DNA of 64,000 nt, from the NCBI RefSeq assembly GCF_006345805.1, contig NC_043010.1:63922001-63986000 (forward strand), in the 5' to 3' direction. Of this stretch, positions 34,628 through 63,998 are shown piece after piece. The stretch is from Octopus sinensis (taxonomy: Eukaryota). Positions within the stretch are counted from its first letter, which is position 1. Each line of letters opens with the position of its first letter. Position numbers and translations under genes: made by a program. The notes under the pieces are model-generated. The model made no database searches, was not told where the DNA came from, and saw nothing but the letters and a program-made list of their open reading frames with translations.

Positions 34628-34631
34628 TATA

Positions 34632-36019: not shown

Positions 36020-36028
36020 ATATATATA

Positions 36029-36221: not shown

Positions 36222-36239
36222 ATATATATATATATAGGT

Positions 36240-36676: not shown

Positions 36677-36742
<66 letters not shown>

Positions 36743-36778
36743 CACACATATATACGAATACATATGTATATACACACA

Positions 36779-36818
<40 letters not shown>

Positions 36819-41280: not shown

Positions 41281-41465
41281 AGACTTGTGAGAAAATGTTT
41301 AATCGTTATCCTATTTCTGCAAATCATCAAACTTTTTGTTAATTTCCGCACTGCTTAATTGGCTGAATTACACTGAAACTAATCCTCAATTCATATGCTC
41401 AAAAGCCATACGATTTTAAACTTTACGTTATATCTATAAAAAAAAATAATGTCTGAGCAGTCAAC

Positions 41466-41880: not shown

Positions 41881-41915
41881 TTTTTTCTTGCATCAAGTTT
41901 TTCAAAAGATCAAAT

Positions 41916-42574
41916 TTAACTCTTTGGCACTCAGATTACTCTGCCAAATGTAATGCTTATTTATTCACATTGTTTAGAATTAATCATGGCATTATCTCAT
42001 AGTTTTGAAGGTGGTGAGCTGGCAGAAATGTTAAAACGCCGGGCGAAATGCTTCGTGGTATTTCGTCTGCTGTTACGTTCTGAGTTCAAATTCCACCGAG
42101 GTTGACTTTGCCTTTCATCCTTTCGGGGTCGATTAAATAAGTACCTGTTATGCACTGGGGTCAACATAATCGACTTAATCTGTTTGTCTCCTCTATGTTT
42201 AGCTCCTTGTGAGCAATAAAAAAATAAGAAACGTTAGCACGCCGGGTGAAATGCTTCATAGTATTTTGGCTGTCTTTACATTCTGAGTTCAAATTCTGCT
42301 GAGGTCGACTTTGCCTTTAATCCTTTCGGGGTCGATAAATTAAGTACCAGTTGTGTACTGGGGTCGATCTAATTGACTGGCCCCCTCCCCCAAAATTTCA
42401 GGCCTTGTGCCTAGAGTAGAAAACATTATCTCATAGTTTTGAGATTTCAATCATGTGATTGTTTATTTTCAGAATTACATTGTAGGGTAGGTGTGAGAGG
42501 CTGGATCTATCCAATTTGAACTATAAGCAGAATATTTTGGCTGGACATGGCTGGCCTAAATGCTAAAGAGTTAA
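41916..42574. mobile_element. piggyBac-like MITE containing a nested SINE dimer
   Basis: TTAA-CTCTTTGGCA ... TGCTAAAGAG-TTAA; internal sequence homologous to 9661-9888 in reverse. Confidence 0.8.
42009..42423 (+). mobile_element. Family B SINE dimer (two different tails) within a single 19-bp TSD
   Basis: TSD CATTATCTCATAGTTTTGA at 41990-42008 and 42424-42442. Confidence 0.88.
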
Positions 42575-44274
42575 GATGCTGTGTGATCTCATTACACACT
42601 ACTTTTCACACTACTGCCTTCAGTTCCAGTTGATGGTTTCTTTTCAGATATTTTAAATTGTAGGTCAATCTAACAACAGTGGTGATCAGCAAATATTCGC
42701 AACAATTATGTCACGAAAGAAAGTAGTAATAGGAGTGCTTTGTGAAAGCAAAAAAACAAAAATCAAATCATTCTTATAGACTTTAAAATTGAAATGAAAA
42801 TATGAAAGAATGAAGGAGCGAGGTGGGAGGATGTACTATATGATTACAGTTAGTTGATGAGTTACTAGACTGATGAGCACTTAACTAAGTCATAAAAAAC
42901 TGCATTCTTTGTTGTCTCTCTCTCTCTCTCTCTCTCATGCACACACATACACCCCCTCACATAGTGACATACAACATATGTAGCTACAGACATTGCCATC
43001 CTGCTGATATTAATATTGTTGTTTCCAGTTGGTTATACTTAAGTTGGTGGACAGGGAGTGGTGGTGGTGATGGTTGTATCGGCTTTGGTGCTGGTGGTAG
43101 TGATGGTGGTGGTCATATTGCTCTTGTAAATTGTATTGATGCTTCTATTTAGTCTTAAGTCAATCCTGTGATCAGAGAGATTCCAATCAACTTTCAAAAT
43201 ACACTGGGGCGCCACATTATCCTCATGTTATTGTCTTTATTGTAGATGGAACTATTTATCTTATTTGCACTATTGTTGCAGTTGGTGTTAGTCATAAGGG
43301 AGTTGGTGAATTAGTAATGGCAGCAGCTGTACTGGTTTTGGTGTTGATGATAGATAGTGGTGGGGCTGGTGAAGAATGATTTATACACATCTATCCATCT
43401 ACTCACCCATCCATCCATCCATTCACTCATTCATTGATCCAACAATCCGTTCACACACACACACACACACACACACAAAACAGATGTGTACATGTGTGTA
43501 TAGGATGAGATTTACACAAGATTCAATTTCTGACAGGATGTTGATCTGTTAAACTATGTTATGGGTGTGACTCCATTCTTGCCATTGACTAACTTCCTTC
43601 GTTTACTTATTCCTACGTTCTTGGCAACGACATGTTTTAATTCCTGTCTTTCTCAGTTATTTATGACAGCACAGGAAGAGGACATCTTATGTGAGAAGTG
43701 TCAGCTGTTTTTAATGGACAAACTGACACACACACACACACACACACACACTTATGGGCTCAGCATGGCCAAATGGTTAAGAAGGTTGCTTCATACTAAT
43801 GAAGTCACTGGTTCAATTCCACCACATAGCATCTTGGTCGAGAGTAATTTCTTATGGTATAGAGTCAGCTCAAACATTGTAAATAAAAATGGGATAGAAG
43901 TCTGTTGGGTGGATTATACTTGTAACTGAAAAATTCTCGTTTGTCATAGATTGTGTCATGGTGAATCTGCTTGTCATTACGCTAAGGGTGTTCGTGTGGG
44001 TAGAATGCCTGCTTACACACTAATTACATGAACAAGTCAGTCAGTTGATCAAACAACTGAATATTCATCATTCACTCTCTCTCTCTCTCACACACACTAA
44101 CACAATTTGAAAGTGTGCTGGAAGGCATGGCATGGTAGTTTTTTTGGTGATAATTTCTTCAATCAAATTACACAACAGTCCAGTTGGCTTGCATAATAAC
44201 AACAAGTGGATTGTGGAAACTCATGTATGTCACATAAAGTGTAACAATATCAATTACATTATGTGTGTGTGTGC

Positions 44275-44323
<49 letters not shown>

Positions 44324-44447
44324 CATACATACACACAAACACACATATATATACATACACACATATATACAGACAAATACATAATATCAATATATATATA
44401 TACACACATATATATATATACATACATATACATATATATATATGCAT

Positions 44448-44501
<54 letters not shown>

Positions 44502-45126
44502 GCTGGGGAGTGAATCATCCATTTCAGAGAAATAAAATCTACAGCATGTGTTGAATATTCTGTTTCTCAGACTAGTTGGATATAGTATACAAGTATCTAG
44601 CTGTGGTAGAAAAAGTAGAGTGTAAGGACAGTGTGTGCAGGGGTTATACGTTGGAGTGTGTTAGTGGTTGGTTTCTTATCAACCAATCATACGTTTGGGA
44701 TGAATGTGGTCTAGGAAGTTTTTGTGTAACAATCACTCTATTCCAGGTGTAGGAACACTACATGAGACCATTATGGGTTTGTGCAGAATCAGTGGTTGCT
44801 TGGGGCAAAAGATTTTCTGGCTCTGAAGTGTAAGGCTAGGAGGTGCAGTTTTGCTTATGTTATGCATAAATGTGAGACCAGCTGGAGCAATCCTCAGTAG
44901 GTGTAGAGTTTGGTAGCATTTGTAGTGACTTGAGGATTAGAGAGTCTGTGTTTAGAAAGGTTAAAGTAGAAAATTGTTTCATTGATATGTGCAGTGTGTT
45001 ACTTGTTTGATGTGGAACTGGTTTGTCTTTGATCTGACCTGATGTGTGCTAACAAGTAACTGCAGATGATGATGAATGCCTTGTGATGTTGAGACAACAT
45101 CATTGAATCTGCCTTTCTAATTACAG

Positions 45127-45300
45127 GTGATGGTGACTGCTGGTGGAGAGTGGACAGAACTACAAAAAGTAGAAGATTGTGTTTTCCAAGGACTTGTGGA
45201 TCTCAGTCGGCCAGAAATGGCAGAAGGTGGTAAAGTACATATGAATGTGAAGGGCAAAGGTACAGGCCAGTACACCACGTATTTGGAGTATGATGTCTAA
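45127..45300 (+). CDS. Terminal coding exon of a second hillarin/KY-like paralog (VMVTAGGEWTELQKVEDCVFQGLVDLSRPEMAEGGKVHMNVKGKGTGQYTTYLEYDV*)
   Basis: Acceptor ctttctaattacag|GTG at 45126/45127, phase 0; an in-frame TAA at 45118-45120 excludes an unspliced extension; 57 codons plus TAA at 45298-45300. Aligns end to end with the last 56 aa of the minus-strand protein (V-V-A, WT-L-K, G-V-L, V--N, T-LEY-V-stop). Confidence 0.75.
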   Translation: MMVTAGGEWTELQKVEDCVFQGLVDLSRPEMAEGGKVHMNVKGKGTGQYTTYLEYDV

Positions 45301-46528
45301 AGCCATAGGGATGATCCCTCTTCCCACTGACTTCTTCAATGATTTATACTTTAATTAATTCCTTTTTTTATTTTTGCCTTTTTTTCCCCCCACATGTTAT
45401 GTTCTTTTTTTTCACTAAAAACTCATGTTTTATGCACTAAATTTACATTCTGAACTTAAAGACTTTGCTTTGTCCGAAGTTGTTATCGTTGTTGGTGTTA
45501 TGATTATTATTATTAAACAGGGCAGTGGATTAAAAGAACTGGTAGAGTGGTGGACAAAACACTTTGCAGTATTTAGTTACATCACTGTATGTTCTGGGTT
45601 TGAATCCTGCCAAAAGTGGTTCTACTTTAGATAAAATAAGAACAAGTGAAGTACTGCAATCTATTTGATTGACTGAACCCCCTCCACAAGAACTTATGGC
45701 CTTGTGTCTGTTTGTCTGAGAACTCAGTTATTACAATGGTCAGTGGATTGATAGAGTTAGTGAAAAGGCAGATGGAAATCTATTTTAGCATTTGGTTATA
45801 ACTCATAACATTCTGAGTTCAATTCCTGCCGTGACACATTTTGTCTTCCATTTTTCTGGGGCTTGATAAAAAAAAAGTATCAGTCAAGTACTGGGAGAGA
45901 CCATTCCCATTCTAAATTCGTAACCTGATAAAATCATAGCAGTGCCAGAAAAAAAGGCCTCATAGTTTTACTTCTAGCACTGAGTTCAAATTCCACCAAG
46001 GTCAACTCAGCCTTTCATCTCTTCAGGGTTAACAAAATAAATTACCAGTAAAGTACTGGGATTGATGGTATTGACTTGCCTCACCCTCCACTCAAAATTG
46101 CTGGCCATGTGCCTAAATTAGAAACACTTATTTATATTATAAAATCATAACCAGTTTTCATTATTTATTTAAAATGTGCTTCAAAAATGCTACTGAAGTG
46201 GCTTTAAATGACCTTCACAGGAACACATGCAAATTGATGGCCCTTGTGGGGACACATGTAATTTATTACCTTGGAATGCTACATAATTCACCTCTAAAAT
46301 TTTGTGTCTTGTTTGAGTGTCAAGGCTTGCTAAATTGTATCACACTGTCTCACACATATCTATGTCAACGAGATATTCAATGTTCAGTATAGTGTTTTGA
46401 CAATCCGTTTGTTATTGATTGACAGACAACATAAAGCTTAAGGGTTCTCACCTGAAATTCATTGTGAATAAACAATTGAAATATCTCAACTATTTTGTTG
46501 CTTGTCATTATTATATTTTGCACACACC

Positions 46529-46560
<32 letters not shown>

Positions 46561-46803
46561 ACAAAAGAAAGTAGCACACAACACATTTGGTAAGAATGAC
46601 ATATGTAACGGAGCTGAGTCAAACTGTTATTAAATACGTGGAGGTGCACGGATTAGTGGTTAGGGTGTTGGACGCATGATTGTAAGATTTCGATTTGTGG
46701 ACCGAGTGATGTGTTCTTGAGCAAAACCTCATTTCATGTTGCTCCAGTCCACTCAGCTGGCAAAAATGAGTAACCCTGCGAAGGATCAGCATCCTGTCCA
46801 GAT

Positions 46804-46993
46804 GGGCACAGGAGTAGCTGTGTGGTAAGTAGCTTGCTTCCCAATCACATGGTTCCGGGTTCAGTCCCACTGCGTGGCACCTTGGGCAAGTGTCTTCTGC
46901 TATAGCCCCGGGCCGACCAAAGCCTTGTTAGTGGATTTGGTAGACGGAAACTGAAAGAAGCTCGTCATATATATGTATATATATATATATAAT

Positions 46994-47040
<47 letters not shown>

Positions 47041-47044
47041 TAAT

Positions 47045-47128
<84 letters not shown>

Positions 47129-47345
47129 CGTGTATGTTTGTACGTCTGTTTGTCCCCCTAGCATTGCTTGACAACCGATGCTGGTGTGTTTATGTCCCTG
47201 TCACTTAGCAGTTTGGCAAAAAGAGACCGATAGAATTAAGTACTGGGCTTACAAAGACTAAGTCCCGGGGTCGAGTTGCTCGATTAAAGGCGGTGCTCCA
47301 GCATGGCCGCAGTCAGATGACTGAAACAAGTAAAAGAGTAAAGAG
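46804..47345 (+). mobile_element. Full-length family A SINE with an expanded internal (TA)n
   Basis: Head, body and tail as in 19704-20110; the internal tract is about 170 bp. Confidence 0.9.
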
Positions 47346-48069
47346 TAAGGGGAATATGTACGCCACTGAAACCAGGAAACTGGTCCTTATGAGCCTGCCA
47401 TGGCTTGAGAAGGAAACACCAAATGTAAATGTATGTTATATGTATATCTATATGTTGTTAATAACACCCAGAAGAAGGCGCTTCTTTTCCACCCACCAAA
47501 GTGAATGGAACTTTGGCCAGGAGGAACTGATGTCATCAGACAGTATCCAACGATCGTCCAGGGTCTCAATCACTCCTTCTGGCTCTCAGCATAACTCTTC
47601 TCTTTTGCTCCACAACAGGAAAAAGACTCTTTTTGCTGCCTCTTCCATCCTGTGCACACACACACACACACATCCTCAACATTGTTTTAATGTCCACTTT
47701 TCCATGCTTGCACGGGTCAGATTTTCTACAGCTGGATGCCCACCCTGTTGCCCTGCTCCAAATCCTTGTTTGTAAAACAAAGTAATGTTTCTCCATGGCC
47801 ACACATATTTCCTCCGAAGAATGGAAATGACTTGACACTGCTTGTATGACAATGACACTCGTTTACGACTATCACCTAATGGCAAGGCTTGGACACACAC
47901 AACTGGCTTCTTTCAATTTCTGTTGACTGAATCTACCCACAAGGCTTTTGTTGTCCTGGAGCTATAGTAGAAGACATTGCCCAAGGTACCATAAAGTCTG
48001 ACTGAAGCTGAAACCATGAGGTTGGAGAGCAAACATCTGAACCACACAGGCACACCTCTATGTGTTTGT

Positions 48070-48173
48070 GTGTGGGCTATGTATGTCTATATTTATCTAT
48101 CTGCCTCTCTGTCTGTCTATCTATCTATCTGTTTGTCGCTCTCCTTTTCTCTCTATCTATCTATGTCTATCTA

Positions 48174-48208
<35 letters not shown>

Positions 48209-48370
48209 GTCTGTCACTCTCTCTCTCTTTATCTATCTATTTGCCTCTGTCTATGTATCTATCTGCCTGTCTGTCTATTTATATCTGTCTATGTGTCTAT
48301 TTAGCTATCTATCTAGCTAGCTGTCTGTCTGTCTATTTATCTATCTACCTACCTACCTACCTACCTATCT
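48070..48370. repeat. (CTAT)/(CTGT)/(CTAC) tetranucleotide compound repeat
   Basis: Directly visible. Confidence 0.9.
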
Positions 48371-49863
48371 ACATACCCATGCATATATTTGATATACCTG
48401 TGAGCGAGAGTGTGTGTCTATATAAGTTTATGTGTGTGTGTCTGTATAAATCTCAGTCAAAGTGCACTATAAAAAAATGACACATTGTTTTAATGTGATC
48501 CTAGATCAGAAAAAGGTCCCTGCCCTCAACACCCACTCAAAACTCAATAGCTTGATCATATCTTTTTTTTTTTTAGAGCTGAGTTCAGGCTAAACCACAA
48601 GAATAACTTGACTATAACTGTTACCCAAGCAGAAGGATTCTCCCCCTGTAGACTCTACTTCAGATCTTCTTAGATTAAGCCCCACCTATCTGGAAAACCA
48701 TTCCAGTCATGACTATCTCATAGTTTGCTTTTATCAAATGTAATTCTATTATTTTAGCTCTTATCTTAATCACTAGACTGTGGCCATGCTGGGGCACTTG
48801 CTTTTATATTGACAATTGTTTTATCAAATAGCTAAGTTATACATTTGAGATAAAGGGTCACAATTCAACACACCACTGAACATAAACACTCACATGTATG
48901 CATGTTTACATGTATACATATGTGAAGGACCCTCCTATGGAAGACGGTATATGAGCGTTCAGCTTTTGCTGAATGACCTGCACAACTGATTTCTTTTATA
49001 GTGACCAAACATTCGTGCCACACATGAACTCACTCCCTGCATCAAATCGATGCTGTCTGGACAGGTTCACTGTGTGCCACATGTTGAAGTGATCACAGAG
49101 CAACATGAGATGAAGTGTTTTGCTCAAGAACACAATGCACCACCCAGTCTAGGAATTGAAACCCCAATCACCATATTGTGAATGCAACACCCTAACTAGG
49201 CCGTGCATAATCACACACACACACAAATTCTTTTATTCTTTCACTTGTTTCAATCATTGGACTGCAGCCATACTAGGGCACTGCCTTGTTGAATTTCATT
49301 TGAACAAATTGACCCCAGTACTTATATTTTATCTTTATATTCTATCAGTCTCTTTCACTGAACTGCTAAGTTATGAGGACATAAACACCAACACTGGCTG
49401 TCAAGCAGTGATGAAGGACAAACACACCCACCCACGTATATACATACATGCACATGTATGTATATGTTTCCATCTACCAAATCCACTCACAAGGCTTTGG
49501 TTGCCCTCAGGTTATAGTAGAAGACACTTGCCCAAGGTGCCATGCAGTGGGACTGAACCCAGAACCGTGTGGCTGGGAAGCAAATTTCTTACAACACAGC
49601 CACACTTGTGCCTGTTGTTGTTATATATATAAATATAAAACAACAAAATTTTACATAGAGTTACTGAAGGTTTTGTACCTACAAAGGCAAGCCTTGTGGA
49701 CAGCTCACCAGACTTTATATGAATATACAAAATTTTAAAATATCTATATCACAGACATAAGGAAATGCTCAGAACTCGATGAATACGGAAAAACATAAAT
49801 GAGTACGGGTTATTTCCTCTTAATCAGAAGGGGAAAAAAAATTCTTAACAGACTTGGAGAAGC

Positions 49864-50754
49864 CTAACAAGCAAACAGGGAGATCCAATTTTCTAGTAAG
49901 TAGCATTTGAAATGGATACATTTAGAAAACACTTCTTTATGGCTGTTTAATGCGCCAGGCTTCTTAAAGACTTTAATAATTTTGGTTCTCTTCATGATGC
50001 AGATCTTGTAACGGCCACTTTCATTAATATATGGGTCCAGATAATCAATTAATTTCCACCTGACAACACACAGAGTCCCTTGATCTCTGAGATGCCACAC
50101 ATAGCAGGCCAGGGATATGACAAACTGTCTTTCTGGGACTCTGAAGGATGACTGGTAGTTAAGAAAACGTTTCTTAAATGAAGTACTTGCTGAACCAGTA
50201 TATTTATAAACATGGGATGTGGCCCTATTCGCACTCCTGGTAACATATGGCACAGGGCTGGTCATCCTATTGGCGTCAAAGATGAATGTTTGGTCCTCAT
50301 CTGCAGTGGCGGAACTGGGAATGGCAGATATCTCCTTCAAGTCATTGGTTCTGGATAGGTTGTTATTTCCATGTGTGGCATTTGTACTGGTCACTCTATC
50401 TGCATCTATGGTTTGTTCATTATCCATGGCGGTGGTACTGTGATCTTCGGTGATGCTGGTCCTGGCTTGGTTATTATCTCTGGGTGTGGCAACTGTATTA
50501 GTGCGAGTCCTGGTTAATCTGCCAATAATATTTCTGTTTGATGTTACATTACTGTCATTATGGATATTAGGTCTAGGTATCACCATAGCCTCAGAGATGA
50601 CCCCTTCAGCCTCGCATCGACCTCCTATTGGATAGTTATTATATACCTTGCAAGAGCAATCTGCCTCCTCTCTTGTATTGTGAGTACTTGATAACATGTT
50701 TTTTATGTTAGGTGCACAACTAAAGGAGACTCCTGGGTTGTGTCTGTTAAACAA
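49864..50754 (-). mobile_element. Penelope-like GIY-YIG endonuclease region with a long low-complexity spacer
   Basis: 296 open codons: CSC..YPIGGRC (CxC..CPxxGxC-like), GVISEAMV...YKYTG..SFKKRFLNYQSSF, LACYVWHL, RWKLI, ICIMKR..I, LNSHKE..SKCIH; this is the motif order of PLE-type GIY-YIG domains. The ATG shown is probably not a true start. Confidence 0.75.
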
Positions 50755-51374
50755 ATGCCTGTATCTATGTGTGTGTGTAAATGTTTGTCTATCAATTTAA
50801 AGAAAATATTTCCACACATAACATCTGCCTTCCATACTGGTATGGGTTGGATGGTTTGACAGTTGCTGGCCAGAATTCCCTGTCGTTCTAGCTGTAACTA
50901 AATAGATCAAGTGATGTTATCGAAAGTGAGCGAGTGAGAAAGTAAGAGAGTGGTGAATGGGACAACTGTATCGTTGGTGAATTCCATAGCTGTCCCTCCA
51001 TGAAGTTCTGTCAAGACAGTATTTCGAACCGTTTAGCCTACTCTCTATCGTTTGCTCTCACTAACTAATTTCTTTTATTCGGCACACAGGCCATGACACA
51101 GAGGGGACAGCACAAGGTAAAAACAAAAAACATTTAGGGGCTGAGTATTTATAATAACACATTCCAACTTGAAAGATGGATATACCTTATAACAATAGCT
51201 AAATAATAGGTCACTCATTATCTATTTCAACTTTTCATGGCATAGAAAAGGTCAAGAGTCAAGTGGAAAACACACATCAACGTTTATCCCTGACAAAACA
51301 ATAGGTCGTATGGCTAGGGAGAATTTACAGATTCAGTTTCGAATCTCAGGTCGGGCTAAGAGAGGTCCCACACA

Positions 51375-51416
<42 letters not shown>

Positions 51417-52224
51417 ATGTCTCTGCCTTGTTTCCACCAGACATATTCCACTCACATAGTCTTGGTCAATCCAAGACTACATTAGAAAATAATTGTTCAA
51501 GAAGCTGGGCAGTAGAAGAGAGGATGGAATCGGGTATCTGTGAAGTGAACTTCTTAACTGCAACAGCTACTTCTAATGAATTTTTTTAAAGTACAAATAA
51601 AGAATTGGAATTATAAAATAATAAAAACAGAACTCATGAGAAAAGCTTTCAAGAGCCCGTTGACGTTGGTATATAAATACAAAAATTGTAATGATATAAG
51701 TACCAAGAAACACGAAGATTTCTTATCAAGACAACGTCTTCTATAAAATACATGGAAAAGTGTAGGAACGAAAATTGTTTAGTGAGTACAAAACCAGGTC
51801 CAAATTATTTTACAAACACGGTCGACTTTTTTCAATCTTAATATCGAACCAAACACAGGTATAATACTAATTATCATTATTAATTATATTTTTACATCAA
51901 ACGAATCAAATAAATCCAGAAGTAGAAATGTTTGAAATTAGTCAAAAAAATGCTTCTACGTTCGTTTGTTTTGGTGATGAAGTTTTTCAGGCGGATGTTG
52001 AAAGCATTTTCATTATCCCCCACTTGAAAAAATTCTTAGGGGTTGCGCTTGCATGCCTTGTTCTTGAGCCAATGAATAAATCCTCCTGGAAAAAGTCCCC
52101 ACAAACCCCCCCCCCCCCCAAAAACGGGAAAAGACGACCAGAAAATTTACGTTTTGTTTATGAAACAGGGAGAGTTGCTTCCCTTGTTTTATTGGCGGGA
52201 GAAATTGTTACTCAGAAGAAATAG

Positions 52225-52645
52225 TTATTTCTGTATTGCCCACAGTTGGGGGTTAAACATAGAAGGGACAAACAAGGACGACTAAAGGATTAAGTAGATT
52301 ACATCGACCTCAGTGCGTAACTGGTACCTATTTAATCGACTCCGAAAGGATGAAAGGCAAAGTCGACCTCGGCGGAATTTGAAATCAGAACGTAGCGGCA
52401 GACGGAATACCTATTTCTTTATTGCCCACAAGGGGCTAAACATAGAGGGGTCAAACAAGGACAGACAAAGGGATTTAGTCGATTATATCGACCCCAGTAC
52501 GTAACTGGTACTTAATTTATCGACCCCGAAAGGATGAAAGGCAAAGTCGACCTCGGCGGAATTTGAACTCAGAACGTAGCGGCAGACGAAATACCGCTAA
52601 GCATTTCGCCCGGCGTGCTAACGATTCTGCCAGCTCGCCGCCTTG
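52225..52645 (-). mobile_element. Family B SINE dimer
   Basis: Two cores; junction gacggaatac|ctatttc near 52410. Confidence 0.9.
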
Positions 52646-53374
52646 AACTAAAAAAATATTAACTGAATTTCGGTATAAAATTTCCAACCAATTAGTGCTA
52701 ACAAAACCACCAAACTCATTGAATTAGCGTCGAATTGGTCGAGGGTTCCACGGACACTTACTCTAATGTAATTTTCGATTACCACCTATCGACCCGGCTT
52801 CTACACAGTTTCCGTCTACCCAATTTCATTGACAAGATATAGATCGACTCAAGGCTATAAAAACTAGCAAGGTGCTACGTAGCTGCAACGAAATTGAAAT
52901 GTCACGTTCGCGAAGCGAATGTTTAAGCCATTCTGCACCAGGGAGAATTACTGGAATCGAGCGAGTATTGTATGGAGTAATTTTTAATAGAGAAGAAAGT
53001 GCTGTTTGAGGTAGCTTACCTTTTTATGGTTTTGTGTATAGAAGCAGGGGCTGTGTCTGTGATTCTTCGTGATAGTGAAACATAAAATGGTTGATGATAG
53101 TGTTGCGTAAAAAAGAAAAAAAAGTAGGAATGGAGAAAGGGAAAGAACTCCAAAGAGTTGACGTGGAAAGGAAAGAATGGGAAATGGGAGTTAGAATAGG
53201 GGCCGGGGATGAATGTAAACACAATATGGACGTAGAGAGAGAGAGAGAGAATTTCTTTATTCACCATACGGTTGAGAAAAAGAGGGGACGATACGAGGAC
53301 AGACAAAACAAACATTGGGGTCAGGGTATCGAATGAGACGAAACGTATGAATAAACAAACAATTAAAATATATA

Positions 53375-53597
53375 GGTACTAGTAGCGTAGACTGGACCCG
53401 GTTTGCGCACACGCGCGTCCGCGCTAGCCAGACGTAGGCAGTCGATCCTACGAGCTGACTGGCGCATGCACGATATATACTAGTATATATCGTATACAAG
53501 TATATATCGTGCATGCGCCAGTCAGCTCGTAGGATCGACTGCCTACGTCTGGCTAGCGCGTGTGCGCAAACCGGGTCCAGTCTACGCTACTAGTACC
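53375..53597. mobile_element. Mutator (MULE)-like fully palindromic MITE with a 9-bp TSD
   Basis: GGTACTAGTAGCG...CGCTACTAGTACC; TSD AAATATATA at 53366-53374 and 53598-53606. Confidence 0.88.
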
Positions 53598-54119
53598 AAA
53601 TATATACAATCAAATGAGAATGAGTGATTAACAAAAAATGAAGCGGAGGACGCGGTTGACCCTACAAACCACATACTCACACTGAAGACTTTGCTTTCTC
53701 CTTTTTTACATTCTCGTTTAAACAGGTTCTTTCACTCGCAACATACTTGCTATATAGACTTCCATCTTTTACGAAACACACTTTGCGACAGGCATTTCTT
53801 CTCCAGCCTTATTTTCCGTTTCATGTGGAAAGAGAGAGAGAGAGAGAGCCAGGGCGAAAGTGGTTGAACGACAGCTAACACCTACGAGCAGACGTCTTAA
53901 TACTTAAAAAAAGGCAAAGTGAAAGACAGCAAGTCTATGGAACGGAAGTCGGAGTGTGTTGGCGAGGGATTTCATGTCAATCAATCAGGGGTCCTTTTTT
54001 CTTATTGAGATTGGGTTAATTCACCAAAGCATAAAAAAAGTACAACTAGCCTCATCACTGGTGAGCGATTTTAGCTTGCTACCGTCTACTTCGATTTTGC
54101 GCAATATTTTGGGCGCCTA

Positions 54120-54325
54120 TCACGCCGGGCGAAATGCGTTGCCGTATTTCGTCTGCCGTTACGTTCTGAGTTCAAATTCCGCCGAGGTCGACTTTGCCTT
54201 TCATCCTTTCGGGGTCGATTAAATAAATACCAGTTACGCACTGGAATCGATGTAATCGACTTAATCCGTTTGTCTGTCCTTGTTTGTCCCCTCTGTGTTT
54301 AGCCCCTTGTGGGTAGTAAAGAAAT
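54120..54325 (+). mobile_element. Family B SINE
   Basis: Intact CpG-rich core and tail ccccttgtgggtagtaaagaaat. Confidence 0.88.
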
Positions 54326-54598
54326 ATATCTTGCGGAACATCAAAGCTGTGACTGTTGGCGCGGGAGAAGACTACAATCAACTTTAGACTTTGGGCTGGT
54401 TTTTATTGTTTAGCTGAGTAAACTGGAGTGAAGTGCCTTGCTCAAGGACACAACATACTGCTTGGTCCAGGAATTGAAACTTTAACCTTATAGTCATGAG
54501 CAGAACACCTGAGTCATTTGGACTTGTGCTTTTATGATATGAAATTACTCTGCTAATTAGTAACAGCGGTTGAGTATCATTGGAGACCAGCAATGGTG

Positions 54599-54883
54599 GG
54601 TACTACTAGCGAATAGTGGTCCCGGTGTGCGCACTCGCGCTAGCTAGTCGTAATTAGTCGATCCTACAACGACTTGCGCGTATGTTTGTATTTCAAGGCT
54701 GAATACATATCAAAGAAAATTAAATAATATTTTTCGAACAAAGTAAATAATTTTTTAAACTAAGTAAATAAATTATTTTCATAAACAAACTCAGGTTAGG
54801 GTTAAAAAGTTGTTGTAGGATCAACTACTTACGACTAGCTAGCGCGAGTGCGCGCACCGGGACCACTGTTTGCTAGTAGTACC
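54599..54883. mobile_element. Mutator (MULE)-like MITE with about 80-bp TIRs and a 9-bp TSD
   Basis: GGTACTACTAGC...GCTAGTAGTACC; TSD GCAATGGTG at 54590-54598 and 54884-54892. Confidence 0.88.
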
Positions 54884-55216
54884 GCAATGGTGTTTGGAGG
54901 AAATTAATTTGAAGTGCAATAAAAAAGAATGAGAAAATTTGATCTGTGTTTTTGGGTGTTGGATCATCATCACCATCCTTGTCGTAGCCATTGTTATAGG
55001 TGAGATGGTAGAATGGTTAGCATGCTGGGTAAAATGCTTAGTGACATATCGTTTGTTCCTACATTCAGAGTTCAAAATCTGCTGAGGTCGGCTTTGCCTT
55101 TCATCTTTTCAGGGTTGATAAATTAAGTACCAGTGGAGTACTGGGGTTAATGTAATCGACTAATCCTCTCCCTCAAATTTCAGGCCTTGTGCCTTTTGTA
55201 GAAATGATTATTATTA

Positions 55217-55442
55217 TTTAAGAAACACACAAAAGCCGTTCGATTCACTTCAACATTAAGGTTTAATTTGTCAAAATATTTTCGTCGCTTTAAGACCGCG
55301 ACCTGTTCACTGACAAAAATCCGTGCTGCGCAGCACAAATTTTTGTCAGTGAACAGGTCGCGGTCTTAAAGCGACGAAAATATTTTGACAAATTAAACCT
55401 TAATGTTGAAGTGAATCGAACGGCTTTTGTGTGTTTCTTAAA
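55217..55442. repeat. 226-bp near-perfect palindrome centred at 55329/55330
   Basis: 104-bp perfect outer arms, a 2-bp mismatch and a perfect 14-bp core GTGCTGC|GCAGCAC. Confidence 0.97.
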
Positions 55443-55800
55443 TGGCTTACAAACACCTTCCACGCTGCAATTGTTTTCGTTCCAGCACACGATCTCAGAT
55501 CAAGTCACTTGCTATGCAAGTACATCTCCGTAATTATTATTATTATTATTTAGCATCTGTTTTCCAAGTTGGCATGAGTTAGTTCGACAAGACCTAAGTC
55601 CGAGAGCTGTACCAGGCTCCAGTCTGATTAATGGAATTTACTGTTCAAAACTTAAGGTCATGTGGTTGTTAAGAAGTTCATTTTGCAACCACATGGTTCT
55701 GGGGATTGAGCACACTGCACAGCACTTTGGATGTCTTTTCGTAGAACCCTGGGTTAACAAATTCCTTGTAAATAGAATTTAGCAGCTCAAGGCTGTACAG

Positions 55801-56001
55801 CTGTGGTTTTCAACCAAGGTTCCGCCAGTACAGTCCAGGGGTTCCGCAAGAAGTTACAAAACTGCTAAAATTGGCAGTAATTTATAATTCTCCTGTGCAG
55901 ATATGTGTGCATAAGACTATAAAATTGTTGCACAGGGGTTCCTCGAGCCAGTGGAATGTTTCCTTGGGGTTCCGCTCCAGCAAAAATTTTGAAAAGCACT
56001 G
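55801..56001. mobile_element. hAT MITE with an 8-bp TSD
   Basis: CTGTGGTTTTCAA ... TTGAAAAGCACTG; TSD CTGTACAG at 55793-55800 and 56002-56009. Confidence 0.85.
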
Positions 56002-56136
56002 CTGTACAGAAACTCTTTCTCTCTCTGGGGATAATTATAACCCGGGCCATCACTACAATTGTGTCAATTAGTGATGTTTGATGAGGTGAACAAACAATTA
56101 ATGATAATTATAATTATATTTTATTGTGTATTATTG

Positions 56137-56175
<39 letters not shown>

Positions 56176-56277
56176 GTGTGGTATAGAATAAAAATGTTTA
56201 CTGAAACGATTGTAACATAAATCTGAATTTCTCTTTTCCTCATTTTAGTTATACACATTTATAGACATATACATACA

Positions 56278-56500
56278 TACTCTCTTTACTCTTTTACTTC
56301 TTTCAGTCATTTGACTACGGCCATGCTGGAGCACCGCCTTTAGTCGAATAAATCGACCCCGGGACTTATTCTTTGTAAGCCCAGTACTTATTCCATCGGT
56401 CTCTTTTTGCCGAACCGCTAAGTGACAGGGACGTAAACACACCAGCATCGGTTGTCAAGCAATGCTAGGGGGACAAACACAGACACACAAACATACACAC

Positions 56501-56577
<77 letters not shown>

Positions 56578-56742
56578 TACGACGGGCTTCTTTCAGTTTC
56601 CGTCTACCAAATCCACTCACAAGGCATTGGTCAGCCCGGGTCTATAGCAGAAGACACTTGCCCAAGGTGCCACGCAGTGGGGCTGAACCCAAAACCATGT
56701 GGTTGGTAAGCAAGCTACTTACCACACAGCCACTCCTGCACC
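56278..56742 (-). mobile_element. Full-length family A SINE
   Basis: Reverse-complement match to 19704-20110, with an internal (TA)n. Confidence 0.9.
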
Positions 56743-57398
56743 TTATCATATATATCATCTTTTAATGCCTGTCTTCTATGCTGGTATGGGTGTAACAGTT
56801 TGATGGGATTTGAGGGATGTTAGGACTGCATCATGTTCCAATGTCTGCTTAGGCATGGCTTCTTTGGCTGGACTCTCCTCCTAACACCAAACACTTTACT
56901 CCATATATGGGTGCTTTGTATTTTTTTTTTTTTTTGGCCACCAGCACTAGTGAAGTTGGCACACAGCTTGCAAGACTGCTGACCCTGAGTGGGGCAACTT
57001 TACATGAGGAGACAAAGGGTGAAAGTATGAGAGAAGGGGCCCTACATGACCTCTCTTGGGGGTGGGAATGATCACGTGGTTTTGGATTCAGTCCTACAGT
57101 GTAGCACCCTGGGCAAATGTCTTCTACTATAGCCTCAGGCCAACCAAAACTTGTGAGTGGATTTGGTGGACAGAAACTGCACGAAAGCCCATTTCGCGTT
57201 TTGACGAAAGAGCCTGATAGAATAAGTACCAAATTCAACAACAAAAAATGTTCTGGGCCGGTGGTTTTGTTTGACCCTTGATGGTGATGTCCTAGCACAG
57301 CTGCAGTCCAAGGACTGATACAAGATATATATATACATACATATATATATATACATACATACATACATACATACATACACACACATACATATATATAC

Positions 57399-57429
<31 letters not shown>

Positions 57430-57430
57430 C

Positions 57431-57477
<47 letters not shown>

Positions 57478-57504
57478 TATACACACACACACACACACAT
57501 ACAC

Positions 57505-57600
<96 letters not shown>

Positions 57601-58436
57601 TATATATACATATATACGACGGGCTTCTTTCAGTTTCCGTCTACCAAATCCACTCACAAGGCATTGGTCAGCCCGAGGCTATAGCAGAAGACACTTGCCC
57701 AAGGTGCCACGCAGTGGGACTGAACCCAAAACCATGTGATTGGGAAGCAAGCTCTTTACCACACAGCCACTCCTGCACCTTATCATATATATCATCTTTT
57801 AATGCCTGTCTTCTATGCTGGTATGGGTGTAACAGTTTGATGGGATCTGAGGGATGTTAGGACTGCATCATGTTCCAATGTCTGCTTAGGCATGGCTTCT
57901 TTGGCTGGACTCTCCTCCTAACACCAAACACTTTACTGCATATATGGGTGCTTTGTATTTTTTTTTTTTTTTGGCCACCAGCACTAGTGAAGTTGGCACA
58001 CAGCTTGCAAGACTGCTGACCCTGAGTGGGGCAACTTTACATGAGGAGACAAAGGGTGAAAGTATGAGAGAAGGGGCCCTACATGACCTCTCTTGGGGGT
58101 GGGAATGATCACGTGGTTTTGGATTCAGTCCTACAGTGTAGCACCCTGGGCAAATGTCTTCTACTATAGCCTCAGGCCAACCAAAACTTTGTGAGTGGAT
58201 TTGGTGGACAGAAACTGCACGAAAGCCCATTTCGCGTTTTGACGAAAGAGCCTGATAGAATAAGTACCAAATTCAACAACAAAAAATGTTCTGGGCCGGT
58301 GGTTTTGTTTGACCCTTGATGGTGATGTCCTAGCACAGCTGCAGTCCAAGGACTGATACAAGATATATATATACATACATATATATATATATACATACAT
58401 ACATACATACATACATACACACACATACATATATAC

Positions 58437-58467
<31 letters not shown>

Positions 58468-58468
58468 C

Positions 58469-58516
<48 letters not shown>

Positions 58517-58539
58517 CACACACACACACACACATACAC

Positions 58540-58580
<41 letters not shown>
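56581..58580. repeat. Direct tandem duplication, period 1037-1038 bp
   Basis: 56581 corresponds to 57618 and 57304 to 58342; both units end in a (CATA)/(CA)/(TA) microsatellite. Confidence 0.95.
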
Positions 58581-58581
<1 letters not shown>

Positions 58582-61500
58582 CACATGTATGTCTGAGAAT
58601 GTTTACATTTTGTGATTACATGAGCAATGGTTAGTAATTCATTTGATCCATGCTAGCATGGAAAATGAACGTAAAGTGAATGATGTTTGTGTGTTGCTAT
58701 ATCAACAATGACTGTCAAGTGTTGCACACCATTGTTCACGATGCGCTTCCTTGCATTATTGTAGCCTTCACATGATGCTACCCCGCTGGCTCGGTGGGCA
58801 GGCCAACAAATGAGACAACAGCCTGTCGCAAGGTTACTCATTTACAACTTTGCTCAGGAAAGCAATGCACTACTTAGTCCGGGAATCGAGACCACGATCC
58901 TGCGATCGCGAGAGCATGAGGAATCACTTGGCCAAGCGCCTGAAATACACATTTGTGCTTGTTTATAAACACGTTAAGCTGGGGAGATTGAGTTATCTCC
59001 CTTCACACCAAACCCGCCATTCTATATAAGAGACTGAAAATTGATACCAGGATCAATAATGACCGATTAAATACGGTCGAGGGTAGAGATCCTCTTACTA
59101 AAACGAGTAAAATAATACAGATTAGTGCTGAAGCTGGTTGTGGTGATGAGGTGAGTGACTGGTTCGCATTTGATTAGCAAGACTGCTGTGTTCATGGAAG
59201 ATAAGTTTCAATGATCCGGTCCGTGTAGCTGGAAATCTGAAGTCGTGAACAAATCTTACAACGAATAAACAGCAGGAGTTTAATTTAACCGAAAGCCAGA
59301 GATACTCAACCACAAATGGAAGAATAAAATACAAATAATGACAATATAAATAAAAAACCACAAGGAATGACAATATAAAAAGCGAGAAATTTTATTCATT
59401 GAAGGAAAAAAAAAATATAATTAAAAAAAAAAGATAGTAATGAAATTAGAGAATTTTTAGATATTACAATTTTTTTGCAGCCTTTTTATTTTCTTTGTCA
59501 CTTTGCTTTTTACTTTTGAACTTTGAAATTTAGAACCCAAACTGGACGCAGCTAAAGTTTGAGTGAGAATAAGCAAAATATAATATTGGCAAAGGAAATT
59601 TAGGGGACGTGTGTATATATTATATATATATTTTTGATTGGGGTATTTAAACCTTATAGAAATATAATAGCTATTCAGCTCTGTTGCCATTCAATACATA
59701 TATTTAATTATTGCACATATTTTATATATATATATATATATATAATATATATATATATATACATATATATATACACATATATATACATACATATATAAAA
59801 GGCTGGAAGAGAGTGAGGTGTAGAATATAAAATAAGAGGCTCGAGTGTTGTTTAGAAGGAGCAAAGGTAAGGAGTTTATTTACTGTCATGCTAGGAATAG
59901 TTGCAGACTTTTAGCAAAATACTTTATTGTATACGATAAGGCATAAACTTGCAGTTGGCAGTCTAAATCTCCTAATAGCAACACCTCCTTCCTTGCACCA
60001 AACATGGTATGTAGAGAATGGGGAAAGGTGAGGACAGAATATAGTAACAAAATAACAAACGAAAAATAAAAATATAAACAAGATCCTAAGAGAGAAAACA
60101 ACGCCCCAAATAATCCAAATATTGCTTGACTGAATAACTGTTGTTAGTGATGTGTTGTAATAAAATAGGGAGAGAGAGAGTGTGTGTGGATGTGTGTGTG
60201 TGTAGTATGCGTGTATATGTTAGAAATAAAAGATGGCTGGAGCTTGATGCAGATGTTGGGTCCTTGAAACGGAGCGATTAGTTTTCGTAATTTTTGCAGT
60301 TCAAAGTACAACATATTCACTAAGAGCATGTTGCTTGTATTGCTTTTTGCTTAGATTTTTTTTTTTACTGTTCAGATGAGAGGGATACCCCTTTAAGGGA
60401 TGGCATGTGGCAAAGGAGAGATTGGTGGTCGACCAATTTACCAGACTAATGTTCAATAAGGAAAAGATAAGGCAAATAGTAACAGCTTGGTGTGTTAAGG
60501 ACGGCAGGAAGGTTTGGACAATGTTCTAAATAATTTCGGGGCTGCGCAATCCTATGTACATATTCTACATACATTTACAAATATATGTACATGTTCTACA
60601 TAAAAGGAGTTGTGTGTGTGTGTGTTTGTGTTTATATGTGTAAGTATGGAAATGGAACTTTTTGTCTAGCACTTCAAACTGGAGAATTTCATGACAAATG
60701 TTACACTTAGGAATGTAAACCAACTGAAAATACTGGGAACAGCAAATTTTCGATTCCACGATGGCTGTGTGTGTATACAAGAGTTGTTTTTCCTTTAAGT
60801 CAGTCCTGGGTGAGCAGATCCATAATAAAAGCCTTTCCAGCCATGGCCATTCCTACTTTCTGCATATTCATGATTACATTATTCAATATCTTGTAATTTT
60901 TTTAAACATCATAGGCTGTGATTTGAGGAGATTTGGCTGCTATTTCTCGACAGTCAAAATAACCACTTTATGAAAGAGTGTTTTTATGCATGTGTGTAGT
61001 GTAGTAAGTGACCATACGACCTTCAGCAGGTCTTTTGTCAAATTTATTTACCAAATAGAGTAGAATTCTAATGTAATTCAAAGACATCAATTCAAGAGAT
61101 TGTTTGTGTGTGTACATGCCACATAAACTGTATCAACAATATTTGACAATTGAAACGACACAGATTTTTGGAGTAGTTATTATTGCAAGCTGATAGAAAT
61201 ATCTAGTTTGGGTGTAAACCGGGTGTTTCATCCATTCCACTCCTTGCCCAACTGGTGCTGGGGTGGTTGGTGGTGCAGGGTTAGCACTTCCTACTTATCA
61301 GTATTTAGCTAGGCTACGTTTGTTTGAGAATAAACATCTTTTCTACATACTGCATGGTGGTGTTACCGCTAGCAGCCCAGTAGCCTGAGGTATAGAGCAA
61401 CAGGGTTTTATGACTCTTGGTTTATTCTAAAGTACCTGTGTATTAGAAGGTTCACATTAAGTTTGGGTTGGACAATGTACAGACTTTTCCATTACTAACC

Positions 61501-62522
61501 TATTACGCCATGTTGGAAGGGAAGTTGGAAGGAATTATTAGAAGGCACAAAATAAAGGATATCAACAAACATGGGTTATGGCATGTTGAGTCTGTATGTG
61601 TGTATGTATGCATAGAGGAGAGGAAGGGCAGATAACTCAATAGGCATGGACCTAAGACTCCAGGCAATTAATTACAAAAAGAAAAGGACAATGTTTCGTT
61701 TAAATACACAAAGGAAAGATTGAAATATAAAAATATATAATGTAATCTAAACTTAAAATATATTGTAGACTATAGGGTTCCTCAGAGAAACTCCTAGACT
61801 AAGAGGAGGCCAGAAAAGAATTTCTATGGGAAACAAGCCAGTTCATAAGTTATAACAGAGGAAAGGGAAGGACGGACATTGTTGGTTCACAATGGAAGGA
61901 GTTGAACAGAACTGTAGGGTGTTCAGTTTTCAAGCCAGACTAATGTGAAATGACAATGACAGTTGGCAGAGTATCTCTTGGCCAGTTCTCTTGTCACTCT
62001 AGAGACATGTGTCTAGAAAACAAGGGAGTAGAAAGATATTAATGAGCAGGGAGGTGGTGCAAAGGTTAACCAGGATTAAGTGCAAACTAACTCCCTGTAT
62101 TCTCTTGCTCTGTACTACTACGTCCTCCATTTCGCACACATAGAGTCACACTATACTGGCAATAAAGGTGAGTAAGAAGAGCCTGGCTCAGTGGCTTTGT
62201 CATAAAATGTATGTAATCTGGGAAAATAAACAAAGGCATGAGACAGACTCTGAAGCTCCTCTTCAAATCAGTATTTTCAAGTGTCAAAAACATTTGTCAT
62301 TCATTTCTCCTCTTTACTACACGAGAGGTGTTCACTTATTTAACAAACTCGTTTTGTTTTCTCGGATCTTTCTGTTTGTTATTTTGCCCTAGTATATTTA
62401 GCGTCTATTAGCAAAAATAAGCAACATTCAAAGGATTGTGAATAGTGGGGGGGTGCAGAGAGAGGTGTACTGCAATTAACAGCTACCCCACTCCATCCTA
62501 AAAGCATCTTATCAGAAGCGAA

Positions 62523-63998
62523 TTAAACGGAATATTCCAGAAGGGTTGCAAAACTACTTGCATCACCACCCAGATTTGCATTAAGTGTTACTCGGGTATT
62601 TGTACCCCAGTATTTGCCCAGTTCGACTGTACCTTCCCAGATATTGTTCTTTTTCTCTAAAGTTGTCCAATCCTGGTCCGCAACAACAGCAACAGCATTA
62701 GCTGAAGGTATGGAAACCTTGAAGTTGACATTCGCCATCTTCTTTTCAGCATAAGGGCCGAGCACCAGAGGATCCCACATGTAGCAACCTTCTTTCCACT
62801 GTGCGTATTGCTTGGGGAAAGGATAGGGTTGTTTTACAATAGCAGGAACATATACCAAGTAGTTGTAAATACCTGGCAGTTGCTGGCTTGTATCTCGACA
62901 TGGCAAAGCATAGAGCTGAAGCTTGTAGAAACCAGTTTTGGACAAAAGTACCATAAAGCTAACAGTAGCACCTTCGGACTGGGTAAAGACACACTCAGCG
63001 TATTCCTTATTCTCCTCCACAGAGATCAAATTAGCTGTAACTCTCATTGGTTCAGCAGTAGCTAATTTAATTTCAACAAAGTTGCCTTCTAACTTAATTA
63101 GTTTATTTGGATGAGTTATTGCACGAAGGCCAAATTCCTCAAATTTCTGTTGGGGACCGAGGTAACCAGGGGGGAGCTTGGGTAGTTGAAGAGCTTTGAC
63201 GTCTTCATTGCAGACAATTAGGTATTGTGCAATATGATAGAGGGTCATACCTTCTAAAGCAGGATCATTAGCATAGATCTCTAGACCATATTCACCTCGT
63301 CCAGGTAAAGAGATTTTAAAGTAAGCTGTGCGCCCAACTATTTGGTCAATAATGTAACCCTCTAGATCATCATCGCTGTGGTGGTTAGATTTTAACTTAG
63401 CCATAAACTGTCTATTCTGTTCTGGCATGCGAATTTGTAGTTCAGCCTTTCCGTCTCGTGAAAGTACACTGGCTGTCTGTTGGAAAGTTGAGAGGCCATA
63501 TTTCTGGAAAGCTGCGCCAGTACCCCATGTGAGATAACTGCAAGGTGGGAAGGGTGTAGGTTCTGGTGATGATACAGATTCTTGAATGATTTTGTATTCG
63601 CACACCTGGGAATAAACGTTGTCTTTGTTCTCTGGAGTGTCTTCCTTAGCATATATGTACAACACATATGAACCAGTAACAGGCAGGCGAAGGCGGAAAG
63701 ATGCGATGCCATTGCTGCTCTCCTGCATCCCGTAACGATTAATCTTGATGCCTTTGTACTCTTCTCTACCGTCTTCAAACTGGATGCTGAAGTTGAAGGC
63801 CAGGGGTCGTCGTTGGTGAGGGTAGGTGAGGCGAATGTTCAGTTCACCACGTGCATTAATAACGGCTGTGGTGTTACTGATAAATTCCAGTTCATACTTG
63901 AAGAACTGAGGCTTCATGTGTGGTTGATTCTCAAATTCTTCCAAACTAACAGGTTGTTCTAGCAGCTGCCACTTAGGGTCGTCAGGGAAATGAGTAAA
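62523..63998 (-). CDS. Hillarin / kyphoscoliosis peptidase (KY) / LTD-1-like protein, C-terminal part; 5' part lies beyond the window
   Basis: The track's 473-aa ORF extends in frame to the window edge: FTHFPDDPKWQLLEQPVSLEEFENQP... through ...FATLLEYSV*. The HFPDDPKWQLL...PVSLEEF motif and the repeated beta-rich units ending in G-x-Y-x-L-x-[IL]-Y-A (GSYVLYIYA, GEYGLEIYA, GFYKLQLYA) match my recollection of the region after the transglutaminase-like core in this family. Complex sequence, no stops in 1476 nt. Confidence 0.85.
   Translation of the reverse strand, partial: FTHFPDDPKWQLLEQPVSLEEFENQPHMKPQFFKYELEFISNTTAVINARGELNIRLTYPHQRRPLAFNFSIQFEDGREEYKGIKINRYGMQESSNGIASFRLRLPVTGSYVLYIYAKEDTPENKDNVYSQVCEYKIIQESVSSPEPTPFPPCSYLTWGTGAAFQKYGLSTFQQTASVLSRDGKAELQIRMPEQNRQFMAKLKSNHHSDDDLEGYIIDQIVGRTAYFKISLPGRGEYGLEIYANDPALEGMTLYHIAQYLIVCNEDVKALQLPKLPPGYLGPQQKFEEFGLRAITHPNKLIKLEGNFVEIKLATAEPMRVTANLISVEENKEYAECVFTQSEGATVSFMVLLSKTGFYKLQLYALPCRDTSQQLPGIYNYLVYVPAIVKQPYPFPKQYAQWKEGCYMWDPLVLGPYAEKKMANVNFKVSIPSANAVAVVADQDWTTLEKKNNIWEGTVELGKYWGTNTRVTLNANLGGDASSFATLLEYSV

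Follow-up and report, generated by a model that had tools for sequence, protein, structure and literature searches.

A short exon at 45127-45300 on the plus strand of a 64,000-nt stretch of Octopus sinensis DNA (contig NC_043010.1; the whole stretch is called the window here, and all window coordinates refer to it) is the final coding exon of a molluscan gene that is known, conserved and annotated and that encodes an uncharacterised protein of about 226 residues. This short protein is related to the C-terminal tail of hillarin, and the last exon of hillarin itself lies on the minus strand of the same window. It is considered, with a probability of about 0.9, that the exon belongs to an ancient, mollusc-wide tail-only copy of hillarin, the first coding exon of which has been lost to an assembly gap only. 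The identity of the exon, its splice junction, its paralogy with hillarin, the phylogenetic spread of the gene, its linkage to hillarin and the purifying selection on it were established by sequence comparison. An earlier description of the window (referred to below as the first-pass annotation) had reported the exon as a hidden paralogue of hillarin; several parts of this description were confirmed and others had to be abandoned.

The acceptor reads ...tgcctttctaattacag/GTGATGGTG at 45127 on the plus strand (the slash marks the splice junction here and below). An in-frame TAA at 45118-45120 leaves the frame open only from 45121, and 57 codons are followed by the stop TAA at 45298-45300, so that the exon is translated into VMVTAGGEWTELQKVEDCVFQGLVDLSRPEMAEGGKVHMNVKGKGTGQYTTYLEYDV and a stop. 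In this respect the sequence, coordinates, acceptor and phase 0 given in the first-pass annotation were accurate. The collinearity with the hillarin C-terminus down to the stop, which it had also noticed, was reproduced by BLASTP of the exon peptide against the minus-strand open reading frame (ORF), with 18/58 identities at E 4e-5 and both sequences aligned to their final residue. The 57 exon residues pair with the last 56 residues of the hillarin ORF, and both peptides terminate in ...LEY-x-V followed by a stop. As a control for chance, a hidden Markov model (HMM) built from 52 hillarin homologues was scored on all 2579 six-frame fragments of the window; a profile search of this kind had been suggested by the first-pass annotation. 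The model matched +45121-45297 at E 5.8e-5 (model positions 527-583 of 584), and this was the sole plus-strand match, the next one (+37163-37462, E 0.68) being dismissed as low-complexity noise. When several hillarin homologues were used in tblastn, their own C-termini matched the exon at E 0.001-0.004.

The probability that this similarity arose by chance is practically nil. In its favour it could be said that the exon was not reported at E<=10 when the 492-residue segment of the window was run by tblastn against the window itself, so homologues and a profile were needed to detect it, and that Pfam gave no match in the 57-residue product alone, because the exon lies beyond the Ig-like_KY domain. 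The idea is refuted by the profile score in the window, by the alignment of full-length orthologues with hillarin at E 5e-63 and by the shared ...LEY-x-V end. The similarity of the exon to the hillarin tail exceeds chance.

The exon could be assigned to its gene by comparison with other cephalopods. It is identical to Octopus vulgaris CAI9733323.1 in 57/57 residues (170-226) and in 174/174 nucleotides, and shares 52/57 residues with Octopus bimaculoides LOC106868331. The match to O. vulgaris places the window in the vulgaris group of octopuses, in an assembly other than GCA_951406725.2 or in a sister taxon of it. A word-indexed protein search with the 57 residues returned no match, and a HMMER scan of 1.84 billion representative proteins matched the exon to P0084, a decapodiform transcript product of 226 residues, with 68% identity over its last 57 residues (E 3.6e-16). 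The same scan retrieved P0085 from the cuttlefish Acanthosepion pharaonis; two further sequences, P0086 and P0087, were rejected as spurious low-complexity matches. The model of P0085 (CAE1176328.1) departs from the conserved frame after ...DMANGG, at GG/GTAAGG inside the last exon, and its tail is unrelated, which is probably due to a mis-predicted splice. With P0084 as query, 22 full-length proteins of about 225 residues were obtained, all carrying PF23265 only. They come from the cephalopod O. bimaculoides (XP_014769019.1, the product of LOC106868331), from the bivalves Pinctada, Pecten and Mizuhopecten and from the gastropods Nucella, Batillaria, Biomphalaria, Lymnaea, Arion, Aplysia and Pomacea, to mention those that are named. 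O. vulgaris CAI9733323.1 and Argonauta hians GAB1610352.1 fall into the same 90% cluster as the O. bimaculoides protein.

Across the 22 short proteins the mean column identity is 47%, with 25 invariant columns in the family alignment. The invariant residues W178, D194, K205, N209, V210, E223 and Y224 are all present in the window exon, whose C-terminus also fits the family pattern, an ending in ...(L/Y)LEY-x-(I/V/L) and then a stop. PF23265, the Ig-like_KY domain, was found at residues 16-131 of the short orthologue P0095 with 63.2 bits (gathering score 27 bits). Short proteins have one such domain, against three in the minus-strand hillarin exon, and Pfam detected no transglutaminase-like core (PF01841, the W180 domain) in any of the 22. 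In UniProt the orthologues are named "KY-like immunoglobulin-like domain-containing protein", and no paper was found that mentions the short gene, its Pfam family or this name. The gene itself is nevertheless already known to annotation. RefSeq and GenBank entries exist for the sister assemblies, the gene being annotated as XP_014769019.1, CAI9733323.1 and GAB1610352.1, and it is annotated in at least 10 other molluscs as well, so the suggestion that it had been missed is not supported.

The structure of the gene was compared at the O. vulgaris locus (L012), the O. bimaculoides locus (L005), a decapodiform genomic contig (L009) and a decapodiform transcript-like contig (L004). The O. bimaculoides, O. 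vulgaris and A. hians proteins are orthologues encoded by two coding exons with the intron at the same position. In O. bimaculoides residues 1-169 are encoded at L005 10001-10510 and residues 170-226 at 16249-16422, with an intron of 5.7 kb; in O. vulgaris the coding exons stand at L012 10001-10510 and 25391-25564 and the intron measures 14.9 kb. The window exon matches the second of these in position and intron, since it is collinear with L012 and L005 on both sides and the acceptor is conserved. First exons end in ..CAACAG/gtaaga in both octopuses and in ..ATTCAG/gtaaga in L009, and the window side reads acag/GTGATGG. The contig L004 (1507 nt) joins both coding exons and also skips a 1.1-kb intron of the 5' untranslated region (UTR) which is present in L009; for this reason L004 is a spliced transcript. 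Homology to it begins at the window exon boundary 45127, and P0088, a close variant, is present on 110 contigs. The gene models of two octopuses and the transcript of a decapodiform relative therefore both back the junction at 45127, and the exon, as the first-pass annotation had observed, is real, spliced and terminal. Downstream, the first 400 nt are 84% identical to O. bimaculoides and the first 1000 nt 98% identical to O. vulgaris, and the probable 3' UTR contains three candidate poly(A) signals, two ATTAAA motifs (positions 45512 and 45529) and one AATAAA motif (46036).

On the minus strand the hillarin frame is open from 63998 to 62526, that is for 491 codons, with the stop at 62523-62525, and it continues past the window end. 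The ORF contains three PF23265 stretches (E 7e-68, 227 bits), after which come about 90 residues that Pfam assigns to no family. Its identity to Patella hillarin is 60%, and to a hillarin-like protein of oyster 55%. At 91.5% it is also collinear with the O. bimaculoides hillarin gene of 1297 residues, at the 3' end of that gene, which has two units of Transglut_core (PF01841) and Ig-like_KY; the part with PF01841 lies beyond the window. Profile comparison by hhalign of the short family with hillarins gave a probability of 100% and E 5.1e-63 over 224 columns, and paired residues 2-226 of the short protein with residues 267-491 of the window hillarin, so that both sequences were aligned to their very end. 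In tblastn against the window, P0117 found the hillarin segment at 32% identity (E 2e-38). Because the family profiles align end to end, the paralogy, as judged from these alignments, spans the entire short protein and reaches beyond the 57 residues first noticed. The product is, on the other hand, a tail-only protein of 226 residues devoid of the transglutaminase core, and not the full hillarin/KY-like paralogue that had been announced.

The stops of the two genes are 17.2 kb apart, tail to tail, as the first-pass estimate of about 17 kb had it. The first-pass annotation was also right that an intron precedes the plus exon and that the minus copy runs through the same point without one (491 open codons and a stop). 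Its conjecture that the minus copy might be RNA-mediated was not borne out. Oyster hillarin has a single 3' exon of 565 codons, and because of this comparable uninterrupted exon the long octopus exon is regarded as ancestral: the open minus-strand ORF is the parental, conserved state and not a retrocopy. The hillarins of Batillaria and Pomacea (L008 and L011) and of Biomphalaria (L010) have extra introns where octopus and oyster have one exon. Relative to the site that corresponds to the cephalopod intron of the short gene, one of these gastropod introns is shifted upstream by about 12 codons.

The main difficulty of the assignment concerns the first coding exon, which is present in the octopus orthologues and missing from the window on account of the assembly gap. 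Collinearity extends over window 34105-55542 with L012 (blocks of about 87-97% identity) and over 34133-64000 with L005 (84-91%). In both comparisons collinearity starts at the right edge of the N gap, and the first coding exon is situated upstream of the breakpoint by 4.0 kb (L012) or 2.7 kb (L005). The missing exon is thus most likely to be sought at the gap 34005-34104, as the first-pass annotation had supposed, and synteny predicts a 507-nt exon beginning ATGGCTGACCAAATTCC and ending ...CAACAG/gt upstream of the sequence at 34105. No upstream plus-strand exon was detected in the window by tblastn, HMM or Pfam, which accords with the first-pass statement, and Pfam found nothing in any of the plus-strand fragments of 34105-45300. 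Since the sequence left of the gap matches the references only through repeats, either the gap is far larger than 100 nt or the scaffold has been misjoined or rearranged there.

Several points count against this assignment. The exon for residues 1-169 has no protein- or DNA-level match in the whole 64-kb window; the sequence left of the gap (1-34004) matches nothing but dispersed repeats in the stretch that precedes the breakpoint, 14.5 kb in O. vulgaris and 10 kb in O. bimaculoides; the intactness of the gene in the O. sinensis assembly would follow from synteny; and the transcript evidence comes from a decapodiform relative and gene models, not from RNA of O. sinensis. To these may be added that between O. 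bimaculoides and O. vulgaris exon 2 has 7 nonsynonymous changes and 1 synonymous, a sample too small to interpret. It could be argued from the unmatched residues 1-169 and the lack of collinearity left of the gap with either reference that the first coding exon has been lost in O. sinensis and that 45127-45300 is a decaying pseudo-exon. Such an orphan relic is very improbable, however, because the exon agrees with the annotated O. vulgaris gene at 100% of its nucleotides and its flanking kilobases at 94-98%, because acceptor and frame are intact, and because the loss of collinearity coincides to the base with the N gap. The whole coding sequence of O. bimaculoides and O. vulgaris gave a nonsynonymous rate (dN) of 0.032 and a synonymous rate (dS) of 0.097, with dN/dS 0.33, and the first coding exon has 10 nonsynonymous and 12 synonymous changes. 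The window exon 2 differs from O. bimaculoides at 8/174 positions (4.6%) without insertions or deletions and its flanks diverge by 11-16%; the nonsynonymous changes of exon 2 affect 5 codons and are clustered in two loops, residues 198-208 and 215-216. The dN/dS of 0.33, the 25 invariant columns and the lower divergence of the exon than of its flanks together indicate purifying selection, as expected of a functional gene.

The remaining alternatives concern the origin of the short gene. In a neighbour-joining tree of the region shared by short proteins and hillarins the short proteins formed one clade in 50/50 bootstraps, and cephalopod, bivalve and gastropod subclades were recovered inside it. 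As a single clade contains class-wise subclades, the duplication is older than the split of bivalves, gastropods and cephalopods; a long branch leaves the clade unplaced among the hillarins of other phyla. The split of these classes is taken to be Cambrian. The short gene is convergent with hillarin at 8 kb in O. bimaculoides, at 6 kb in Biomphalaria and at 17 kb in the window, and lies in tandem with it in Batillaria (8 kb) and Pomacea (5.5 kb); in Pinctada, Pecten and oyster the two genes do not lie within 10 kb of each other. The O. vulgaris locus compared here ends before hillarin, and the greater distance in the window than in O. bimaculoides is due to insertions. An old and local duplication, proposed by the first-pass annotation, is borne out by the single clade across mollusc classes and by the linkage at 5-17 kb. 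A recent or lineage-specific inverted duplicate of hillarin, part of a cephalopod cluster overlooked by annotation, would agree with the tail-to-tail arrangement 17 kb apart and with the cephalopod-shared intron that is missing in bivalve and heterobranch orthologues. The two copies, however, are only 32-35% identical and do not form an inverted repeat at the nucleotide level, annotations of the gene exist for several genomes, and the orthologues of bivalves, gastropods and cephalopods make up one clade and one orthologous family, so that Pecten, Pinctada, Biomphalaria and others refute the lineage-specific cluster, to which hardly any probability can be left. Less remote, although still improbable, is the birth of the short gene as a retrocopy of part of a hillarin mRNA, for which the intronless coding sequence in Pinctada and Pecten, and essentially also in Biomphalaria, may be cited. 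But the copied segment is located wholly within one hillarin exon in oyster and octopus, and an intronless copy is consequently uninformative about the mechanism. A retrocopy would moreover be expected to begin at the 3' end including the UTR and usually to land elsewhere. A local DNA-level partial duplication of the large 3' hillarin exon is favoured because the short gene adjoins hillarin in gastropods and octopuses.

According to the preferred scenario, the short gene arose in ancient times, earlier than the divergence of bivalves, gastropods and cephalopods, when part of the large 3' hillarin exon was duplicated, and in gastropods and octopuses it has remained at 5-17 kb from hillarin. In cephalopods a single phase-0 intron interrupts its coding sequence. 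Pinctada and Pecten have no intron in the coding sequence, and in Biomphalaria residues 17-245 are encoded in one exon. Cephalopod short genes have two coding exons with a shared phase-0 intron, and those of Batillaria and Pomacea have four exons, the last junction (ARDVQ/IKV) being two codons downstream of the cephalopod AQQ/VMV. It is simpler to assume that introns were gained in cephalopods and caenogastropods; the alternative would be an old intron with sliding and repeated loss. The first-pass annotation had considered intron gain or loss between the two copies. With regard to the plus copy the comparison agrees with it, as the cephalopod intron is absent in bivalves and Biomphalaria; with regard to the minus copy the long hillarin exon is not octopus-specific. 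The coordinates of the features discussed are collected in Table 1.

Table 1. Features of the window with their coordinates, strand and supporting evidence.
Feature	Coordinates	Strand	Evidence
Terminal coding exon (residues 170-226 and TAA) of the octopus orthologue of LOC106868331/CAI9733323.1, short "hillarin-tail" protein	45127..45300	+	Match to O. vulgaris (L012 25391-25564), O. bimaculoides and decapodiform transcript
Acceptor side of the last intron (phase 0), with polypyrimidine tract and AG	45107..45126	+	ctgcctttctaattacag/G; nearly identical in O. bimaculoides
Probable 3' UTR	45301..46041	+	Candidate poly(A) signals; extent putative
Last intron, 3' part of 11 kb, with abundant SINE copies and TA/CA microsatellite	34105..45126	+	Collinear with L012 14525-25390 (87-97%) and L005 13220-16248
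Assembly gap, 100 N; expected place of the exon for residues 1-169 (507 nt) and of the 5' part of the intron	34005..34104	.	Collinearity break
Last exon of hillarin, cut by the window end; three Ig-like_KY domains and C-terminal beta-sandwich	62523..63998	-	PF23265, homologues
Hillarin segment (window ORF residues 267-491) paralogous to the whole short protein	62526..63200	-	hhalign, tblastn
SINE-like repeat copies (and others)	98-489, 19704-20112, 28466-28884, 30261-30577, 46809-47356, 56278-56766, 57575-57803	both	

SINE, short interspersed nuclear element.

Some features of the surroundings of the gene may be mentioned. The intron of the short gene contains a 398-nt inverted repeat with arms at 38360-38757 and 38977-39374 (97% complementary, 219-nt spacer), which is also present in O. 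vulgaris (L012 18683-19693) and looks like a foldback element or a miniature inverted-repeat transposable element (MITE-like). In the annotation of O. bimaculoides a gene with a HEM4 domain (uroporphyrinogen-III synthase) on the opposite strand, at L005 1-18154, spans the whole short gene, which would thus be nested; this region is equivalent to the window up to about 47600. No HEM4 exons were found in the minus frames of the window at 38400-48000, and no HEM4 gene is listed at the O. vulgaris locus. About 4 kb at 47595-51626, between the short gene and hillarin, have no counterpart at the collinear locus of O. bimaculoides, where L005 18174 and 18176 adjoin each other, and window 47098-50623 matches the O. 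vulgaris locus; the segment, which includes a 310-codon ORF at 49867-50796 (-) without a significant Pfam match, is probably a transposon insertion. Nothing significant was found by Pfam in five larger ORFs resembling transposon remnants. Just right of the gap, at 34755-35111, there is a tandem repeat of a 67-nt unit (5.4 copies, 91% identity) with long ORFs in several frames. The SINE-like dispersed repeat of about 180-450 nt occurs in many copies on both strands, with translations such as ..HAVGLNPEPCGW.., and is 80-96% identical to copies at the O. bimaculoides and O. vulgaris loci. ARAGORN called no tRNA in the window. Degenerate (TA)n arrays of up to 3.4 kb lie at 809-1578, 2266-5635, 31305-31659 and 35277-35785, with G+C of 11-16% and a strong G-over-C skew. 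TA/CA microsatellite fills much of the window and yields many long spurious ORFs reading YIYIYI or THTHTH, and a purine-rich tandem with a 96-nt unit is located at 11578-12044.

The short protein was modelled by AlphaFold2 with the family alignment (predicted local distance difference test, pLDDT, 90.4; predicted template modelling score, pTM, 0.85), and the model consists of two beta-sandwiches. The first corresponds to the Ig-like_KY domain (16-131), and the second is predicted to comprise residues 132-226, that is 95 residues. The cephalopod intron appears in the model between two strands of the second sandwich, so that the exon would encode only about 60% of it, namely the last 57 residues, and not a whole C-terminal domain as had been stated. 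A Foldseek search of the two-domain model against PDB gave generic tandem-Ig matches only, with template modelling (TM) scores of about 0.3, and was uninformative.

Compared with the hillarins of Hirudo medicinalis, Drosophila (D-Hil) and molluscs, the short protein is equivalent end to end to the last Ig-like_KY domain plus the C-terminal sandwich, at 33% identity, and the motifs GFYKFQIYA, PFPKQY-x-WK-x-GCY and LLEY are common to both. It differs in the absence of the transglutaminase-like (W180) core, in having one instead of three Ig-like_KY domains (counted in the half of hillarin within the window) and in its length of about 226 against about 1300 residues. In O. bimaculoides, too, the short gene is convergent with hillarin. 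Vertebrate kyphoscoliosis peptidase (KY) and Caenorhabditis elegans LTD-1 have the Ig-like_KY type (PF23265) in common with it. KY and LTD-1 carry the transglutaminase-like core, and LTD-1 and D-Hil also contain LIM domains; the short protein has neither. Hillarin is reported to occur at the axon hillock in the leech and at the cleavage furrow in Drosophila, and a genetic interaction between hillarin and the septin Pnut is reported too (Ji et al. 2001, 2005, via PMC3718969, PMC3081291).

As to its role, the short protein shows no visible signal peptide and no catalytic-type core, and in sequence and model it seems to consist of two beta-sandwiches which keep the hillarin-tail motifs. It could be tentatively guessed that it acts as a cytoplasmic stand-alone module binding a partner of the hillarin tail, as an adaptor or a competitor of hillarin. 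To our knowledge, no binding partners of the hillarin tail have been described. A still more speculative suggestion is that an expressed gene for the hillarin tail alone was retained from a time before the molluscan classes split and that its linkage to hillarin in gastropods and cephalopods may arise from functional coupling. The short protein might for instance occupy or regulate the binding site of the hillarin tail, or both genes might share regulatory DNA.

For annotation the impact of the finding is small, the gap removing the first coding exon, so that annotation of the O. sinensis scaffold would give a truncated model or none. The residual interest lies in the conserved tail-only architecture and in the long-kept linkage to hillarin. 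A conserved natural tail-only form points to the two C-terminal beta-sandwiches as an autonomous functional unit, and a soluble, confidently modelled protein of 226 residues may offer a handle for finding what the hillarin tail binds in this poorly understood family.

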